64,000 nucleotides of DNA from Octopus sinensis (GCF_006345805.1 NC_043020.1:25668001-25732000), one strand, 5' to 3'. Shown: positions 3,719 through 39,239, counted from the stretch's first letter. Notes: generated from the sequence alone by a model not told the origin. Translations and numbers: made by a program.

Positions 3719-3954
3719 AATAATAATACTAATAATTATAATAATTATAGTTTCCCACCAAATATCGATATTTTCAACGCAATATACTGGTTTTAAATCA
3801 TTATGCGAGAGAGAAAGGGGGATACGCTTCTATTATAACGGACACAGACAGACACAGACACACACACATATATAGATATATTTAATCTATACATATATAT
3901 ATATATATATATAGATGTATATGTTATATATATGTATATATATATGTATATATG

Positions 3955-3985
<31 letters not shown>

Positions 3986-4313
3986 ATATATTTATACACA
4001 CACCCATATATATATATATATATATATAAATTAATTAATAAGGGTGAGAGAATTAGATACTATTTAATATAGTAATTATATTCAACACCAAGTGGCCTAG
4101 TGCTACGAGAAACCTGGATTATTATAATATTTTATACATATTATAATATTTTTACAAAATAATATAAGAGAGTGGTCACTATATTGCTCACTCTAGCACC
4201 AGTTCATCCAAAGGTTTTCAAACCACGAAAATACATGTGTTCCCATGAAAGCCAGTACGACTGTTAGCTCACACGGACAGGGCAAATAAAAAAATAACAA
4301 AATACAGATTATT

Positions 4314-4390
4314 TTGGGACAATTGTTTCGCTATTAATGAATTAAATGTAATATTACTTACAAAAAATCCATTTGTAGCTCGTCAGCCAA
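4314..4390 (-). ncRNA. Type I hammerhead ribozyme (inverted array copy)
   Basis: Reverse complement reads TTGG-CTGACGA-GCTA..TAGC-GAAA-CAATTG-TC-CCAA. Confidence 0.85.
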
Positions 4391-5154
4391 GACTCTTGAT
4401 GAAATCCACTCAATCACACGCCAGATTTTACCATAACGATAATACGCGTGTGGTTCAATTGATTACATCCGACGTTATAATTCAAATGCCCCAACCAACA
4501 GCGCGCCAAACTTTCACGGAAAACAAATACAGCATTTAGAAATAAATGCAGCATAATTATAATTAATTAATAAGGGTGAGAGAATTAGATACTAATTTAA
4601 TAGTATATTTATTCAACACCAAGTGGCCTAGTGCTACGAGAAACCTGGATTATTATATATTTTATAACATATTATAATATTTTTACAAAATAAATATAAG
4701 AGAGTGGTCACTATATTGCTCACTCCTAGCACCAGTTAATCCAAAAGGTTTCAACCACGAAAATACATGTTTCCCATGAAAGCCAGTACGACTGTTAGCT
4801 CACACGGACAGGGCAAATAGAGCAATATAGTGACCACTCTCTTATATTTATTTTGTAAAAATATTATAATATGTTATAAAATATTATAATAATCCAGGTT
4901 TCTCGTAGCACTAGGCCACTTGGTGTTGATAAATATACTATTAAATTAGTATCTAATTCTCTCACCCTTATTAATTAATTATAATTATGCTGCATTTATT
5001 TCTAAATGCTGTATTTGTTTTTCCGTGAAAGTTTGGCGCGCTGTTGGTTGGGGCATTTGAATTATAACGTCGGATGTAATCAATTGAACCACACGCGTAT
5101 TTATCGTTATGGTAAAATCTGGCGTGTGATTGAGTGGATTTCATCCAGATAGTC

Positions 5155-5229
5155 TTGGCTGACGAGCTACAAATGGATTTTTTGTAAGTAATTACATTTA
5201 ATTCATTAATAGCGAAACAATTGTCCCAA
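5155..5229 (+). ncRNA. Type I hammerhead ribozyme, array copy 1
   Basis: Stem I TTGG/CCAA, core CTGACGA and GAAA, stem II GCTA/TAGC, palindromic stem III ACAATTGT. Predicted GUC cleavage after 5225. Confidence 0.88.
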
Positions 5230-5684
5230 AATAATCTGTATTTTGTTATTTTTTATTTGCCCTGTCCGTGTGAGCTAACAGTCGTACTGCTTTCATGGGA
5301 AACATGTATTTTCGTGGTTGAAACCTTTTTGGATTAACTGGTGCTAGAGTGAGCAATATAGTGACCACTCTCTTATATTTATTTTGTAAAAATATTATAA
5401 TATGTTATAAAATATTTAATAATCCAGGTTTCTCGTAGCACTAGGCCACTTGGTGTTGAATAATATACTATTAAATTAGTATCTAATTCTCTCACCCTTA
5501 TTAATTAATTATAATTATGCTGCATTTATTTCTAAATGCTGTATTTGTTTTCCGTGAAAGTTTGGCGCGCTGTTTGGTTGGGGCATTTGAATTATAACGT
5601 CGGATGTAATCAATTGAACCACACGCGTATTTATCGTTATGGTAAAATCTGGCGTGTGATTGAGTGGATTTCATCCAGATAGTC

Positions 5685-5761
5685 TTGGCTGACGAGCTAC
5701 AAATGGATTTTTTGTAAGTAATATTACATTTAATTCATTAATAGCGAAACAATTGTCCCAA
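5685..5761 (+). ncRNA. Type I hammerhead ribozyme, array copy 2
   Basis: Same intact motif; predicted cleavage after 5757. Confidence 0.88.
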
Positions 5762-6216
5762 AATAATCTGTATTTTGTTATTTTTTTATTTGCCCTGTCC
5801 GTGTGAGCTAACAGTCGTACTGGCTTTCATGGAAACATGTTTTTTCGTGGTTGAAACCTTTTGGATTAACTGGTGCTAAGAGTGAGCAATATAGTGACCA
5901 CTCTCTTATATTTATTTTGTAAAAATATTATAATATGTTATAAAATATTATAATAATCCAGGTTTCTCGTAGCACTAGGCCACTTGGTTTGAATAAATAT
6001 ACTATTAATTAGTATCTAATTCTCTCACCCTTATTAATTAATTATAATTATGCTGCATTTATTTCTAATGCTGTATTTTTTTTTTCCGTGAAAGTTTGGC
6101 GCGCTGTTGGTTGGGGCATTTGAATTATAACGTCGATGTAATCAATTGAACCACACGCGTATTTATCGTTATGGTAAAATCTGGCGTGTGATTGAGTGGA
6201 TTTCATCCAGATAGTC

Positions 6217-6293
6217 TTGGCTGACGAGCTACAAATGGATTTTTTGTAAGTAATATTACATTTAATTCATTAATAGCGAAACAATTGTCCCAA
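6217..6293 (+). ncRNA. Type I hammerhead ribozyme, array copy 3
   Basis: Same intact motif; predicted cleavage after 6289. Confidence 0.88.
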
Positions 6294-6745
6294 AATAATC
6301 TGTATTTTGTTATTTTTTATTTGCCCTGTCCGTGTGAGCTAACAGTCGTACTGGCTTTCATGGGAAACATGTATTTTCGTGGTTGAAACCTTTTGGATTA
6401 ACTGGTGCTAGAGTGAGCATATAGTGACCACTCTCTTATATTTATTTTGTAAAATATTATATATGTTATAAAATATTATAATAATCCAGGTTTCTCGTAG
6501 CACTAGGCCACTTGGTGTTGAATAATATACTATTAAATTAGTATCTAATTCTCTCACCTTATTAATTAATTATAATTATGCTGCATTTATTTCTAAATGC
6601 TGTATTTGTTTTCCGTGAAAGTTTGGCGCGCTGTTGGTTGGGGGCATTTGAATTATAACGTCGGATGTAATCAATTGAACCACACGCGTATTTATCGTTA
6701 TGGTAAAATCTGGCGTGTGATTGAGTGGATTTCATCCAGATAGTC

Positions 6746-6822
6746 TTGGCTGACGAGCTACAAAATGGATTTTTTGTAAGTAATATTACATTTAATCATT
6801 AATAGCGAAACAATTGTCCCAA
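6746..6822 (+). ncRNA. Type I hammerhead ribozyme, array copy 4
   Basis: Same intact motif; predicted cleavage after 6818. Confidence 0.88.
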
Positions 6823-7278
6823 AATAATCTGTATTTTTTGTTATTTTTTATTTGCCCTGTCCGTGTGAGCTAACAGTCGTACTGGCTTTCATGGGAAACA
6901 TGTATTTTCGTGGTTGAAACCTTTTGGATTAACTGGTGCTAGAGTGAGCAATATAGTGACCACTCTCTTATATTTATTTTGTAAAAATATTATAATATGT
7001 TATAAAATATTATAATAATCCAGGTTTCTCGTAGCACTAGGCCACTTGGTGTTGAATAAATATACTATTAAATTAGTATCTAATTCTCTCACCCTTATTA
7101 TTAATTATAATTATGCTGCATTTATTTCTAAATGCTGTATTTGTTTTCCGTGAAAGTTTGGCGCGCTGTTGTTGGGGCATTTGAATTATAACGTCGGATG
7201 TAATCAATTGAACCACACGCGTATTTATCGTTATGGTAAAATCTGGCGTGTGATTGAGTGGATTTCATCCAGATAGTC

Positions 7279-7354
7279 TTGGCTGACGAGCTACAAATGG
7301 ATTTTTTGTAAGTAAATTACATTTAATTCATTAATAGCGAAACAATTGTCCCAA
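7279..7354 (+). ncRNA. Type I hammerhead ribozyme, array copy 5
   Basis: Same intact motif; predicted cleavage after 7350. Confidence 0.88.
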
Positions 7355-7806
7355 AATAATCTGTATTTTGTTATTTTTTATTTGCCCTGTCCGTGTGAGC
7401 TAACAGTCGTACTGGCTTTCATGGGAAACATGTATTTTCGTGGTTGAAACCTTTTGGATTAACTGGTGCTAGAGTGAGCAATATAGTGACCACTCTCTTA
7501 TATTTATTTTGTAAAAATATTATAATATGTTTAAAATATTATAATAATCCAGGTTTCTCGTAGCACTAGGCCACTTGGTGTTGAATAAATATACTATTAA
7601 TTAGTATCTAATTCTCTCACCCTTATTAATTAATTATAATTGCTGCATTTATTTCTAAATGCTGTATTTGTTTTCCGTGAAAGTTTGGCGCGCTGTTGGT
7701 TGGGGCATTTGAATTATAACGTCGGATGTAATCAATTGAACCACACGCGTATTTATCGTTATGGTAAAATCTGGCGTGTGATTGAGTGGATTTCATCCAG
7801 ATAGTC

Positions 7807-7883
7807 TTGGCTGACGAGCTACAAATGGATTTTTTGTAAGTTATATTACATTTAATTCATTAATAGCGAAACAATTGTCCCAA
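7807..7883 (+). ncRNA. Type I hammerhead ribozyme, array copy 6
   Basis: Same intact motif; predicted cleavage after 7879. Confidence 0.88.
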
Positions 7884-8336
7884 AATAATCTGTATTTTGT
7901 TATTTTTTATTTGCCCTGTCCGTGTGAGCTAACAGTCGTACTGGCTTTCATGGGAAACATGTATTTTCGTGGTTGAAACCTTTTGGATTACTGGTGCTAG
8001 AGTGAGCATATAGTGACCACTCTCTTATATTTATTTTGTAAAAATATTATAATATGTTATAAAATATTATAATAATCCAGGTTTCTCGTAGCACTAGGCC
8101 ACTGGTGTTGAATAAATATACTATTAAATTAGTATCTAATTCTCTCACCCTTATTAATTAATTATAATTATGCTGCATTTATTTCTAAATGCTGTATTTG
8201 TTTTCCGTGAAAGTTTGGCGCGCTGTTGGTTGGGGCATTTGAATTATAACGTCGGATGTAATCAATTGAACCACACGCGTATTTATCGTTATGGTAAAAT
8301 CTGGCGTGTGATTGAGTGGATTTCATCCAGATAGTC

Positions 8337-8411
8337 TTGGCTGACGAGCTACAAATGGATTTTTTGTAAGTAATATTACATTAATTCATTAATAGCGAAC
8401 AATTGTCCCAA
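8337..8411 (+). ncRNA. Type I hammerhead ribozyme, array copy 7 (GAAA read as GAA)
   Basis: One A is missing from the GAAA core, either a real mutation or a consensus indel error. Confidence 0.7.
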
Positions 8412-8864
8412 AATAATCTGTATTTTGTTATTTTTTATTTGCCCTGTCCGTGTGAGCTAACAGTCGTACTGGCTTTCATGGGAAACATGTATTTTCGTGG
8501 TTGAAACCTTTTGGATTAACTGGTGCTAGAGTGAGCAATATAGTGACCACTCTCTTATATTTATTTTGTAAAAATATTATAATATGTTATAAATATTATA
8601 ATAATCCAGGTTCTCGTAGCACTAGGCCACTTGGTGTTGAATAAATATACTATTAAATTAATATCTAATTCTCTCACCCTTATTAATTAATTATAATTAT
8701 GCTGCATTTATTTCTAATGCTGTATTTGTTTTCCGTGAAAGTTTGGCGCGCTGTTGGTTGGGGCATTTGAATTATAACGTCGGATGTAATCAATTGAACC
8801 ACACGCGTATTTATCGTTATGGTAAAATCTGGCGTGTGATTGAGTGGATTTCATCCAGATAGTC

Positions 8865-8941
8865 TTGGCTGACGAGCTACAAATGGATTTTTTTGTAAGT
8901 AATATTACATTTAATTCATTAATAGCGAAAAATTGTCCCAA
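8865..8941 (+). ncRNA. Type I hammerhead ribozyme, array copy 8 (stem III C missing)
   Basis: Reads GAAAAATTGTC instead of GAAACAATTGTC; otherwise intact. Confidence 0.7.
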
Positions 8942-9399
8942 AATAATCTGTATTTTTGTTATTTTTTATTTGCCCTGTCCGTGTGAGCTAACAGTCGTAC
9001 TGGCTTTCATGGGAAACATGTATTTTCGTGGTTGAAACCTTTTGGATTAACTGGTGCTAGAGTGAGCAATATAGTGACCACTCTCTTATATTTATTTTGT
9101 AAAAATATTATAATATGTTATAAAATTATAATAATAATCCAGGTTTCTCGTAGCACTAGGCCACTTGGTGTTGAATAAATATACTATTAAATTAGTATCT
9201 AATTCTCTCACCCTTATTAATTAATTATAATTATGCTGCATTTATTTCTAAATGCTGTATTTGTTTTCCGTGAAAGTTTGGCGCGCTGTTGGTTGGGGCA
9301 TTTGAATTATAACGTCGGATGTAATCAATTGAACCACACGCGTATTTATCGTTATGGTAAAATCTGGCGTGTGATTGAGTGGATTTCATCCAGATAGTC

Positions 9400-9476
9400 T
9401 TGGCTGACGAGCTACAAATGGATTTTTTGTAAGTAATATTACATTTAATTCATTAATAGCGAAACAATTGTCCCAA
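9400..9476 (+). ncRNA. Type I hammerhead ribozyme, array copy 9
   Basis: Same intact motif; predicted cleavage after 9472. Confidence 0.88.
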
Positions 9477-9930
9477 AATAATCTGTATTTTGTTATTTTT
9501 TATTTGCCCTGTCCGTGTGAGCTAACAGTCGTACTGGCTTTCATGGGAAACATGTATTTTCGTGGTTGAAACCTTTTGGATTAACTGGTGCTAGAGTGAG
9601 CAATATAGTGACCACTCTCTTATATTTATTTTGTAAAAATATTATAATATTTTATAAATATTATAATAATCCAGGTTTCTCGTAGCACTAGGCCACTGGT
9701 GTTGAATAAATATACTATTAAATTAGTATCTAATTCTCTCACCCTTATTAATTAATTATAATTATGCTGCATTTATTTCTAAATGCTGTATTTTGTTTTC
9801 CGTGAAAGTTTGGCGCGCTGTTGGTTGGGGCATTTGAATTATAACGTCGGATGTAATCATTGAACCACACGCGTATTTATCGTTATGGTAAAATCTGGCG
9901 TGTGATTGAGTGGATTTCATCCAGATAGTC

Positions 9931-10007
9931 TTGGCTGACGAGCTACAAATGGATTTTTTGTAAGTAATATTACATTTAATTCATAAATAGCGAAACAATT
10001 GTCCCAA
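9931..10007 (+). ncRNA. Type I hammerhead ribozyme, array copy 10
   Basis: Same intact motif; predicted cleavage after 10003. Confidence 0.88.
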
Positions 10008-10197
10008 AATAATCTGTATTTTGTTTTTTTTATTTGCCCTGTCCGTGTGAGCTAACAGTCGTACTGGCTTTCATGGGAAACATGTATTTTCGTGGTTGAA
10101 ACCTTTTGGATTACTGGTGCTAGAGTGAGCATATAGTGACCACTCTCTTATATTTATTTATTTTATATATATATATATATATATAATATATATATAT

Positions 10198-10258
<61 letters not shown>

Positions 10259-10468
10259 CAGAAAATGGAGAAAACTTTTGATCAACAAACAAATTGATCA
10301 ACACATCGGTTATTATTTTTCAATATCAAGCTTTAACGTTGCTTACGGGCCGTTTCACCTGCCAATGTCAGTCGGTGCCTCCAAGGAAAATTTCTAAAAT
10401 AATATTCACCATATTTATTGCACTTCCGATCTAGGACATGGAACTTGGATCTGGACATGGATCTGGAC

Positions 10469-17762: not shown

Positions 17763-18345
17763 TATATTGGCTGTGTCGTAAGAATTTTGCTTTGCTGTCA
17801 CATGGTTTCGGGTTCGGTCCCACTGCGTGGCACCTTGGGCTACTGTCTTTTATTATAACTCTATAGCCTCAGGCCAATAAAGTCTTGTTAGGTGTGGTAG
17901 ACGGAAACTGAATGTATATATATATATATGTTCTTTTTTATACTCTTTAAATTGTCTCAGTTATTTGACTGCGGCCATGCTACAGTACCACCCTAGACGA
18001 TTTTACTAATAAAAGAAATCGACCCCAGAACTATTTCTTTGTAAGCGTAGTACTTATTTTATCGATTGAATTTTGTCGAACCTCTATGTTACGGAGACAT
18101 CAACACATTACCATTGGTTGTCAAGCGATGGCGGGGGTACAAACACAGACATACACACACAGACACAGACACACACACACACACAGACACACACACATAC
18201 AAGGATACACAAAGGAATTCAGTCAATTACATCGACTCCAGTGTGTAACTGGTCCTTAATTTATGGACCCCGAAAAGATGAAAGGCAAAGTCGACCAATG
18301 CGGAATTTGAACTCAGAACGTAACGGTAGACGAAATACGAAATAT

Positions 18346-18572
18346 ATTTCTTTCCACCCACAAGGGGCTAAACACACACGGACAAACAAGGACAGACAAA
18401 CGGATTAAGTCGATTACATCGACCCCAGGCGTAACTGGTACTTAATTTATCGACCTCGAAAGGATGAAAGGCAAAGTCGACCTCGGCGGAATTTGAACTT
18501 CCAGCGTAACGGCAGACGAAATACGCTAATCATTTCGCCCAGCACGCTAACGTTTTGCCAGCTAACCGCCTT
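18346..18572 (-). mobile_element. SINE family A (duplicated copy)
   Basis: Copy of 16502-16733. Confidence 0.8.
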
Positions 18573-27788: not shown

Positions 27789-28644
27789 CATATATTATAC
27801 GAGCAAAACGCTCCCCGTCCAATGGACGGTGCTGAGTTGTCAAACGTCCCATAGGCCTCCCCTTTGAGAAACACTGATTTAACCTAAATTTGAGACACAA
27901 GCAAAAGAAGAAATAAAGATAGACTTTTTTCTATTCCAAGAAAAATGATTTTACAAATGCACGTTCCCACGGCTTTATCAATCGCATTCTCACCTGGAAT
28001 CGATTTTTGTAATTTTTTCAAGACTTATACACGCCTTGATACCGTCGGTATCTACATATCAGATTTGAGCGCAATCGGATGGAGGATGCCCGAGATGCTA
28101 GAAGACAAACACACAGACAGACAGAACAATTTTTATTAATAGATATACAGATATATATGCATACATAAACGCACATACATTTCGATTCTTCGATGTACGG
28201 CAGATGATGCATATTTCCTCATGTAATCTGTATACATTGTACGACCGCATTCATTTGGCTTTCAATGACGTGTACCAGAATAATTACACCAGAAACGTTT
28301 GCAACTGGCTTAGGTCTTAGTATGGCTAGTATGTGGTCACTCTATTAATACGGCATTGTGCTTTCTTGTTTCACCATAATTCCTTACATATACATATACA
28401 TTTTAATGAATACATGAATACATACGTACATACACATGTGTTACGTGTCCGACCCGTGAAATATGCTAGATGCATCGAAACAATTGTCGTGGTTAATAAG
28501 ATCCTCTTATCTTCCATGTTCCGTCTTTCATACCTTATATATATATAAATATATATATGTGTGTGTGTGTATAGATAGATAGATAGATAGATATAGATAG
28601 ACAGATAGATATAGATAGACAGATAGATATAGATAGACAGATAG

Positions 28645-38007: not shown

Positions 38008-38023
38008 ATGATGACGATGACGT

Positions 38024-38066
<43 letters not shown>

Positions 38067-38081
38067 AATGATGATGATGAC

Positions 38082-38153
<72 letters not shown>

Positions 38154-38187
38154 GACGATGACATTGATGATGGCGATGATGATGACA

Positions 38188-38239
<52 letters not shown>

Positions 38240-38249
38240 CGACGACGAC

Positions 38250-38284
<35 letters not shown>

Positions 38285-38377
38285 CGATGATGATGACAAT
38301 GATGATGATGATGATGATAATGATGATGATGATGATGATGATGATGACGTTGATGATGATGATGATGATGATGACGT

Positions 38378-38425
<48 letters not shown>

Positions 38426-38466
38426 CGATGATGATGACAATGATGATGATGACGATGATGATGACA

Positions 38467-38510
<44 letters not shown>

Positions 38511-38511
38511 A

Positions 38512-38575
<64 letters not shown>

Positions 38576-38625
38576 CAATGATGATGATGACGATGATGAT
38601 GACAATGATGATGATGATGATGATA

Positions 38626-38662
<37 letters not shown>

Positions 38663-38720
38663 CGATGACGTTGATGATGATGATGATGATGATGTTGATG
38701 ACGACGACGACGACGACGTC

Positions 38721-38767
<47 letters not shown>

Positions 38768-38770
38768 CGA
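38008..38770. repeat. ~760-bp (GAT)n microsatellite with recurring GAC/AAT/GTT variants
   Basis: Directly visible; the poly-D/M/H/S/I ORFs are artefacts. Confidence 0.95.
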
Positions 38771-39239
38771 TTTCCTTGCCACATGGGTGAAGACTTTTAT
38801 TCCTCCGTTTCCGCAAATATAACGATGAATAATGAAGAAGCAAAAAAGCAAGGAGATCAAAAACATTTGACGATAATTTTAAAGGATGCCGACATCGTAA
38901 ATAATTCATTAAGTAATTTCAATTGATTTTCGATTTCTCTAATATACATATTGTATCACAAATGTTCACAATAATGGCGTATTTATTAGCCGTCACATGG
39001 AAAACTGTTAAACGAATCAACGTGAAAACTTTACGCAGTATGTTTTATACTGCTACTAAAGACAGCCATTTTAGCTTAAATCATCTTCTAGCGTCTTCGA
39101 AGATGAATGAATTACTAAGCATGATAGTATTAGATTTGCTTGTAGACGTGATAGTCACGGCAGGAAGGTCTCTGATTAAAGGTTTTATATATCAATGCTC
39201 GAAATAAAGTTTAAGGAAAATATAATCTTGTAACTTTTA

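Follow-up and report, generated by a model that had tools for sequence, protein, structure and literature searches.

In a 64,000-nucleotide stretch of the Octopus sinensis genome (GCF_006345805.1, NC_043020.1:25668001-25732000; G000:C24:25668001-25732000 in our labelling; hereafter the window), an array of tandem units that carry a hammerhead ribozyme motif occupies positions 4028-10164. Repeat finding in the window resolved the array into an inverted part of 1.5 units and a direct part of 10.3, the unit measuring 528-535 nt (~532 nt), in agreement with the ten forward and ~1.5 inverted units reported in a preliminary description made from the sequence alone. The ten direct copies extend from 4820 to ~10160 at a spacing of 528-535 nt, and the inverted block (4029-4819) shows 92-100% complementarity with the forward units. 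The longest period handled by Tandem Repeats Finder (TRF) was 500 nt, so the array itself lies outside the range of that program. Counting substitutions only, full units in the window are 98-100% identical; most of the differences between them are 1-nt indels. The GC content of the unit is 32.5%. No open reading frame (ORF) was recognized in a unit trimer, in which the longest ATG-initiated frame spans 46 amino acids, and the earlier statement that the unit has no credible ORF was thus borne out. Folded as a circle, the 532-nt monomer gave a minimum free energy (MFE) of -145.3 kcal/mol, with a z-score of -7.45 relative to shuffled sequences.

A pattern composed of the hammerhead core, a 4-bp base of helix II, GAAAC and GTC matched nine times in the window, against 0.00 matches expected from 100 shuffles. 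The ten forward cut sites given in the preliminary description were all correct, as judged from the starts of the CTGACGA core and the ends of the motif GAAACAATTGTC, which coincide with the predicted cut sites of hammerheads 1-6, 9 and 10 (Table 1). The conserved core C3-A9, G12-A14, A15.1-U16.1 and C17 (CUGACGA...GAAA...GUC) is complete in 9 of the 11 copies, and the G10.1-C11.1 pair, helix I and helix II are present in 9/11 as well. The claim of a complete core in each full unit therefore needs amending for the units with sites at 8407 (GAA for GAAA) and 8937 (C15.2 missing), which have a 1-nt defect as assembled. Helix I, read from the sequence, is formed by 5'-CAGAUAGUCUUGG and CCAAAAUAAUCUG-3' (13 positions with two mismatches and one G-U pair); helix II, GCUA/UAGC, includes the canonical G10.1-C11.1 pair and is prolonged by an imperfect hairpin of ~39 nt. 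Helix III consists of only 2 bp (A15.1-U16.1 and C15.2-G16.2) closed by an AAUU loop, and ACAAUUGU at this place is an 8-nt palindrome. All three stems are present, as had been stated, only in this minimal sense. The order of helices is that of type I, with helix I open and helices II and III loop-closed, and cleavage is predicted after GUC.

Within loop 2 (window 9419-9462, and at the same place in each unit), there is an ATG followed by GTAAGT...TAG, splice-site-like strings ~31 nt apart. Some Penelope-like elements (PLEs) begin their ORF within helix II and have an intron directly next to the hammerhead. The strings in the octopus unit are probably a coincidence of AT-rich sequence. An additional occurrence of GAAACAATTGTC at 28488 was rejected as an unrelated chance match with no core upstream.

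To place the array in the genome, we searched the 2.72-Gb assembly and mapped the unit onto ~25 independent loci, of which 21 are complete two-armed insertions. Their layout is constant: a minus arm is followed by a plus arm, both pointing outwards. Each of the 21 has one end of a type designated T1 and one of a type designated T2, a distribution with P ~5e-7 if the ends were chosen independently. T1 ends read ...CACC-CTTAT followed by 9-11 A/T and lie at unit position ~291-293, and T2 ends read ...CTCT-CTTAT followed by nine A/T and lie at unit position ~158. The interval between T1 and T2 is 135 nt, and each of the two start sites is preceded by a hairpin and the CTTAT-W9 motif. In two-armed insertions, both outer ends adjoin (TA)n. 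The unit position of the inner junction differs from locus to locus, and the junction shows either an overlap (microhomology) of 0-11 nt or a filler of 2-21 nt. Arm length is unbiased: in 10 insertions the T1 arm is the longer one, in 11 it is the T2 arm. The insertion in the window obeys the same rule; its T1 end lies at 4028 and its T2 end at ~10160-10164. The inverted ~1.5 units of the preliminary description are no incidental feature: they form the second arm of this insertion. A snap-back (hairpin) cDNA origin of this arm was considered and rejected; the arms are unequal and end at different sites, and the junction is not a mirror image.

Two insertions (L034 and L038) are single-armed, and both end at T1. 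Short 5'-truncated copies seem to be common, to judge from several T1-only sites on C1. At L020, the one non-microsatellite target examined, a duplication of ~8-13 nt flanks the insertion. These dispersed insertions with defined ends, 5' truncation and target duplication are the products of retrotransposition with Penelope-type scars.

The T2 ends of the window (10152-10164), L030, L046, L047 and L020 show short reiterations of ATTT/ATTTATTTT. They look as if the polymerase had slipped or re-aligned at initiation, reminiscent of telomerase-like copying by a TERT-related reverse transcriptase (RT).

The same termini bear on the idea of a foldback-type DNA transposon, in which long terminal inverted repeats made of 532-bp subrepeats would be moved by a transposase. 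Inverted arms of variable length built of tandem subrepeats would fit such an element, and the preference of the octopus insertions for TA-rich targets resembles that of some DNA transposons. In 21/21 insertions, however, neither terminus is an inverted copy of the other (unit ~292 versus ~158); the centre differs at each locus, so no fixed element has moved, and single-armed 5'-truncated copies exist. Identical complete elements with the same centre, accompanied by empty-site excision footprints, were not found among the ~25 loci. We regard a foldback transposon as highly improbable.

We then estimated the size and age of the family. Searching the genome with the unit yielded at least 258 matches of 96-100% identity on many chromosomes. 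A 29-mer across the cut site occurred 883+862 times in the genome, compared with 0 occurrences of the reversed control, and a T1 29-mer occurred 946+961 times. In the first ~133 Mb of C1, the cut-site and T1 29-mers formed ~50 clusters. The family copy number, which the preliminary description had proposed to establish, comes to ~1,750 units, spread over roughly 1,000 loci, the number of loci being extrapolated from the clusters on C1. Full units differ by 0.28% substitutions per site within an array and by 1.13% between loci. With partial units included, the values are 0.50% within the same arm, 0.61% across the two arms and 1.59% between loci. Because divergence from arm to arm is close to that within an arm and far below that between loci, both arms must have been copied simultaneously from a common source. 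The family is young, with ~1% substitutions between loci; this figure and the roughly 1,000 dispersed loci agree with the recent amplification that had been suggested from near-identical copies. Subfamilies are recognizable from shared variants, such as the linked changes at unit positions 58, 132, 214, 241 and 460 in five loci, so there has been more than one master sequence.

The array is one insertion of this dispersed young family and not a local satellite. An ordinary satellite or minisatellite, enlarged by local unequal crossing-over and dispersed by segmental duplication with the hammerhead as a passenger, would account for head-to-tail units of 98-100% identity. Some copies have indeed spread by DNA duplication: L027 (G000:C1:93129232-93132763) and L028 (C1:93120058-93123589) lie 9 kb apart and agree in their T2 flank and in the coordinates of the inner junction (333 | 496), so that a segment bearing the insertion must have undergone DNA duplication once the insertion was in place. 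Such processes do not explain why two precise termini recur at ~1,000 dispersed loci, every locus in a (TA)n tract of its own, nor do they account for the locus-specific inner junctions, the 5'-truncated single arms, the solo T1 fragments and the one target-site duplication; outward inverted arms with defined ends are not made by unequal crossing-over. The satellite explanation is already largely refuted, and we consider it very improbable.

There were 6.8 gap columns per pair of units within arrays and 5.9 between loci, and the mostly 1-nt differences, as frequent within arrays as between loci, look like consensus error. One could therefore ask whether the inverted arm and the indel-rich units are both an assembly artefact of noisy long reads, for example of a chimeric fold-back read. 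The two-armed T1/T2 layout recurs at 21 independent loci on many chromosomes, whereas a random artefact would lack precise termini. Long-read consensus noise accounts for the 1-nt indels and may also explain the two 'defective' ribozymes, not the architecture; an artefact is the least probable of the explanations we considered.

The architecture of these insertions can be compared with that of known elements. PLEs form partial tandems with an adjacent inverted 5'-truncated copy, often have a 30-40-bp 'tail' at one end only, and show a bias towards (TA)n (PMC8557442). Purified PLE protein nicks and extends both target strands, and RT starts at two internal RNA sites whose interval equals the tail (PMC11167929). 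The octopus family likewise shows tandem copies with an inverted 5'-truncated copy, an extension at one end only, (TA)n or AT-rich targets and, to judge from its ends, extension of both target strands and a pair of internal sites downstream of the hammerhead at which RT starts. It differs from PLEs in having no ORF and in its 'tail' of 135 nt instead of 30-40 bp. Exactly one end is tailed in 21/21 octopus insertions, whereas the in vitro PLE study found no strand difference in start-site use.

In L1 twin priming, as reportedly described by Ostertag and Kazazian in 2001, the second priming occurs at a random internal site and an inversion arises within a single-copy insert. As in twin priming, both 3' ends of a staggered break appear to have primed cDNA in octopus, and the outward segments were joined by microhomology; unlike in L1, both start sites are fixed, and both arms extend over several tandem units.

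Other tandem repeats, 330-500 bp in length, have been described as satellites or SINE-like (short interspersed element-like) repeats; each carries a type I hammerhead that presumably works as a dimer. Hammerhead satellites of ~500 bp, such as cave-cricket pDo500, have been known since 2000. Named examples are newt satellite 2, Schistosoma Sm-alpha and cave-cricket pDo500 (PMC7229834). The octopus repeat resembles them in its tandem unit with a type I hammerhead, and is distinguished from them by dispersed insertions with defined termini, which demonstrate retrotransposition.

Coral, mussel and axolotl are the animals in which retrozymes without long terminal repeats (non-LTR retrozymes) were defined, and retrozymes and their circular RNAs (circRNAs) occur in mussel (PMC7229834). 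According to a 2026 preprint, retrozymes derive from the pseudo-LTRs (pLTRs) of PLEs and have consensus lengths of 51-972 bp (10.64898/2026.07.22.740005). The octopus unit shares with animal non-LTR retrozymes the non-coding AT-rich tandem organization, a type I hammerhead with a short palindromic helix III, dispersal, co-occurrence with PLEs, and a monomer predicted to be highly self-paired. At 532 nt it is longer than the retrozymes of 170-400 nt described earlier (PMC7229834) and falls inside the 51-972 bp of the preprint, so the unit is not, as had been supposed, larger than the reported range (10.64898/2026.07.22.740005). It differs from known animal retrozymes in its sequence family, its cephalopod host and the ~47-nt extension of helix II. 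RNA circles and cleavage were shown for those published families and are predictions for the octopus family.

Since the layout of the array matches the published behaviour of PLEs, we assign the family to the non-LTR retrozymes. The segment 4028-10164 is best explained as a single insertion of a non-autonomous, non-coding retroelement of this kind, with a minimal type I hammerhead in each unit (probability about 0.8). A retrozyme-like nature, that is, hammerhead-bearing, non-coding and recently amplified, had been proposed in the preliminary description, and it is supported by the motif, the lack of an ORF and the Penelope-type insertion scars.

A retrozyme of this kind would depend on a PLE for its mobility. 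A genome search with PF01541 (GIY-YIG) returned 5,029 candidates, including several open frames of 775-883 codons. [quoted passage not shown] This type of linker was proposed to target (TA)n (PMC8557442). Many copies in the genome gave an identical GIY-YIG score, from which the PLE family of L052 looks young. It is plausible from these sequences that a candidate, potentially active endonuclease-positive (EN+) PLE partner is present in the genome. In the 3' region of the element (L052, 4735-5084), there are five direct repeats of ~42 nt with CCAAT-like (GATTGG) and cAMP response element (CRE)-like (TGACGTC) boxes; these repeats may be a pLTR promoter.

An insertion of the 532-nt family lies 1.7 kb downstream of this PLE (L052, 6264-7001; T1 end at 6264), in a separate (TA)n and with 96-97% identity to the unit of the window. 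None of 12 PLE hits on C1 was near a family locus (0/12). We therefore did not count the adjacency at L052 as a link between the two; shared targeting of (TA)n or chance would explain it.

On this basis, the insertion could have arisen as follows. A PLE RT/GIY-YIG protein would cut both strands of a (TA)n tract, and each 3' end would prime reverse transcription internally on retrozyme RNA, at one of the two hairpin-flanked sites (T1 or T2). The 135-nt interval between them would be this family's version of the PLE 'tail'. Both cDNAs would run across several units of a multimeric or circular template and would then be joined in the middle by microhomology. By analogy with published retrozymes, paired hammerheads might cut read-through transcripts of the arms after GUC to give 532-nt monomers, and the monomers might be ligated into highly structured circles that serve as template. 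Cleavage, circles and rolling-circle copying are thus suggested for the octopus family by analogy. Animal type I hammerheads usually have a helix III of 1-2 bp with a palindromic loop and are thought to be active as dimers (PMC4209133). By comparison, the octopus motif is of the usual animal type I design and is probably dimer-dependent. The motif is complete, and its self-cleavage is a prediction.

Several observations weigh against the retrozyme interpretation. The Rfam model RF00163 (Hammerhead_1) was compared with the array, as had been suggested at the outset: in a 131-nt search the full model (1-45) aligned to 9398-9478 with 27.5 bits and an E-value of 3.2e-5, but this score misses the gathering cut-off of 34 bits by 6.5, because of a 38-nt insert in loop 2 (helix II). 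No Rfam hammerhead match was obtained over the whole window at the gathering threshold or over 3800-10400 at E<=10; since the model does match the 131-nt segment, these blanks on larger stretches are a filter effect, not absence. The 102-nt hammerhead domain folds with a z-score of -4.35, and its MFE structure pairs GACGA of the core with UUGUC, an inactive alternative. Cofolding of two copies gave a domain-swapped MFE structure in which the expected intermolecular helix III was not formed, and was uninformative. Variant density is 0.22 per nt in the hammerhead versus 0.21 in the rest of the unit, which gives no signal of selection. Covariation in support of the helices was not seen in copies ~99% identical, because they are nearly identical; the sole informative change, 460 C>T in the subfamily of five loci, turns an A.C mismatch in helix I into an A-U pair. 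In comparisons with the single PLE copy at L052, blastn (word size 7) revealed no sequence homology with the unit, and a canonical hammerhead was likewise not found in that copy. Words of the unit were found in 20 runs from seven studies under three organism labels, all of them contigs and none recorded as RNA. In the PLE studied biochemically, hammerhead mutants left insertion in vitro unaffected (PMC11167929); by analogy, the octopus ribozyme may be dispensable for mobility.

Many of these points would be accommodated if the element were mobilised by a PLE with its hammerhead inert or protein-assisted, linear multimeric transcripts of source arrays being copied without self-cleaved monomers or circles. 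The 2-bp helix III, the MFE preference for inactive pairing and the lack of a selection signal on the motif fit such a course. In the PLE system, besides insertion without need of the hammerhead, cleavage was seen only with protein and no reads ended at the cut site (PMC11167929). Several units per arm are also what a multimeric linear template would give. On the other hand, the complete core has been kept in ~1,750 young copies, the circular monomer folds far better than its shuffles, and abundant circRNAs are produced by retrozymes of mussel, coral and axolotl whose hammerheads are similarly minimal (PMC7229834). We consider an inert or protein-assisted hammerhead unlikely, though a serious alternative to the self-cleaving retrozyme.

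For the retrozyme, a concerted reaction might underlie the strict T1/T2 rule, the equal length of the arms and the template common to both. Integration would be carried out by a dimeric ribonucleoprotein (RNP), whose protomers would start cDNA at different hairpin-flanked sites, 135 nt apart on the same RNA, maybe a 532-nt circle copied by rolling-circle RT. This is a tentative proposal, less likely than not.

Table 1. Features of the insertion in the window and its immediate flanks (positions from the first nucleotide of the window)
Feature	Position	Strand	CTGACGA core	Details and basis
Left target, (AT)n microsatellite adjoining the insertion	3868..4027	.		TRF row 3868-4028, flank sequence
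Inverted arm, 1.49 units (unit 31-532, then 1-~291)	4028..4819	-		blastn of unit against window, inverted repeats
T1 terminus, outer (left) end of inverted arm	anchor 4038-4046	-		...CACCCTTAT + 9-10 A/T
Hammerhead, inverted arm	4305..4401	-	4386-4380	C17 at 4318
Head-to-head arm junction	4819..4820	.		blunt; minus-arm unit position 31 abuts plus-arm 128
Direct arm: partial unit (128-532), 9 full units, terminal 1-~158	4820..10164	+
Hammerhead 1	5144..5238	+	5159	predicted cut after 5225; helix I strands, core, long helix II, GAAA, 2-bp helix III, GUC
Hammerhead 2	5674..5770	+	5689	predicted cut after 5757
Hammerhead 3	6206..6302	+	6221	predicted cut after 6289
Hammerhead 4	6735..6831	+	6750	predicted cut after 6818
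Hammerhead 5	7268..7363	+	7283	predicted cut after 7350
Hammerhead 6	7796..7892	+	7811	predicted cut after 7879
Hammerhead 7	8326..8420	+	8341	site 8407; GAA for GAAA as assembled; copy inactive, or error of the assembly in a homopolymer
Hammerhead 8	8854..8950	+	8869	site 8937; C15.2 missing as assembled (GAAAAATTGTC)
Internal T2 site, example	9081..9098	+		CTCTCTTAT + 9 A/T; 135 nt upstream of T1; stop of the T2 arm at array ends
Internal T1 site, example	9209..9230	+		CACCCTTAT + 9 A/T; arm-stop position at array ends
Hammerhead 9	9389..9485	+	9404	predicted cut after 9472; RF00163 alignment here
Hammerhead 10	9920..10016	+	9935	predicted cut after 10003
T2 terminus, outer (right) end of direct arm	~10160-10164			...CTCTCTTAT + ATTTATTT(ATTTT), 4-5-nt reiteration
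Right target, (TA)n microsatellite	10165..10256	.		TRF row 10149-10256

Three other repeats were observed elsewhere in the window. A series consisting of a 22-nt unit, (TA)n and (TAGA)n appears twice, at 532-885 and 1983-2369 (~1,451 nt apart), and represents a microsatellite-rich segment duplicated locally in tandem. At 18187-18525, a 186-nt unit present 1.8 times (84% match) beside (AC)n looks like an interspersed repeat or SINE fragment. An (ATG)n tract of ~255 copies (88% match) at 38008-38771 gives rise to spurious ORFs of 260-362 amino acids on both strands.

Our literature search found no description of hammerhead repeats in cephalopods, in agreement with the preliminary description, and a 2026 repeat annotation of Octopus vulgaris does not contain the words hammerhead, ribozyme, retrozyme or satellite (PMC13282606). 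The octopus repeat is a new family of a known class, the non-LTR retrozymes, and it extends retrozymes to cephalopods. Animal hammerhead ribozymes are housed chiefly in retrozymes, which also yield small circular RNAs in abundance, and the copying of retrozymes back into DNA is still inferred, not demonstrated. If the dimeric RNP were the correct explanation, the family, natural, high-copy and very young, would serve as a reporter both of the PLE mechanism and of the way from a circRNA retrozyme to tandem DNA. Its young, numerous and clean insertions, with two fixed start sites, one per end, and a shared template, place countable constraints on Penelope-type integration.

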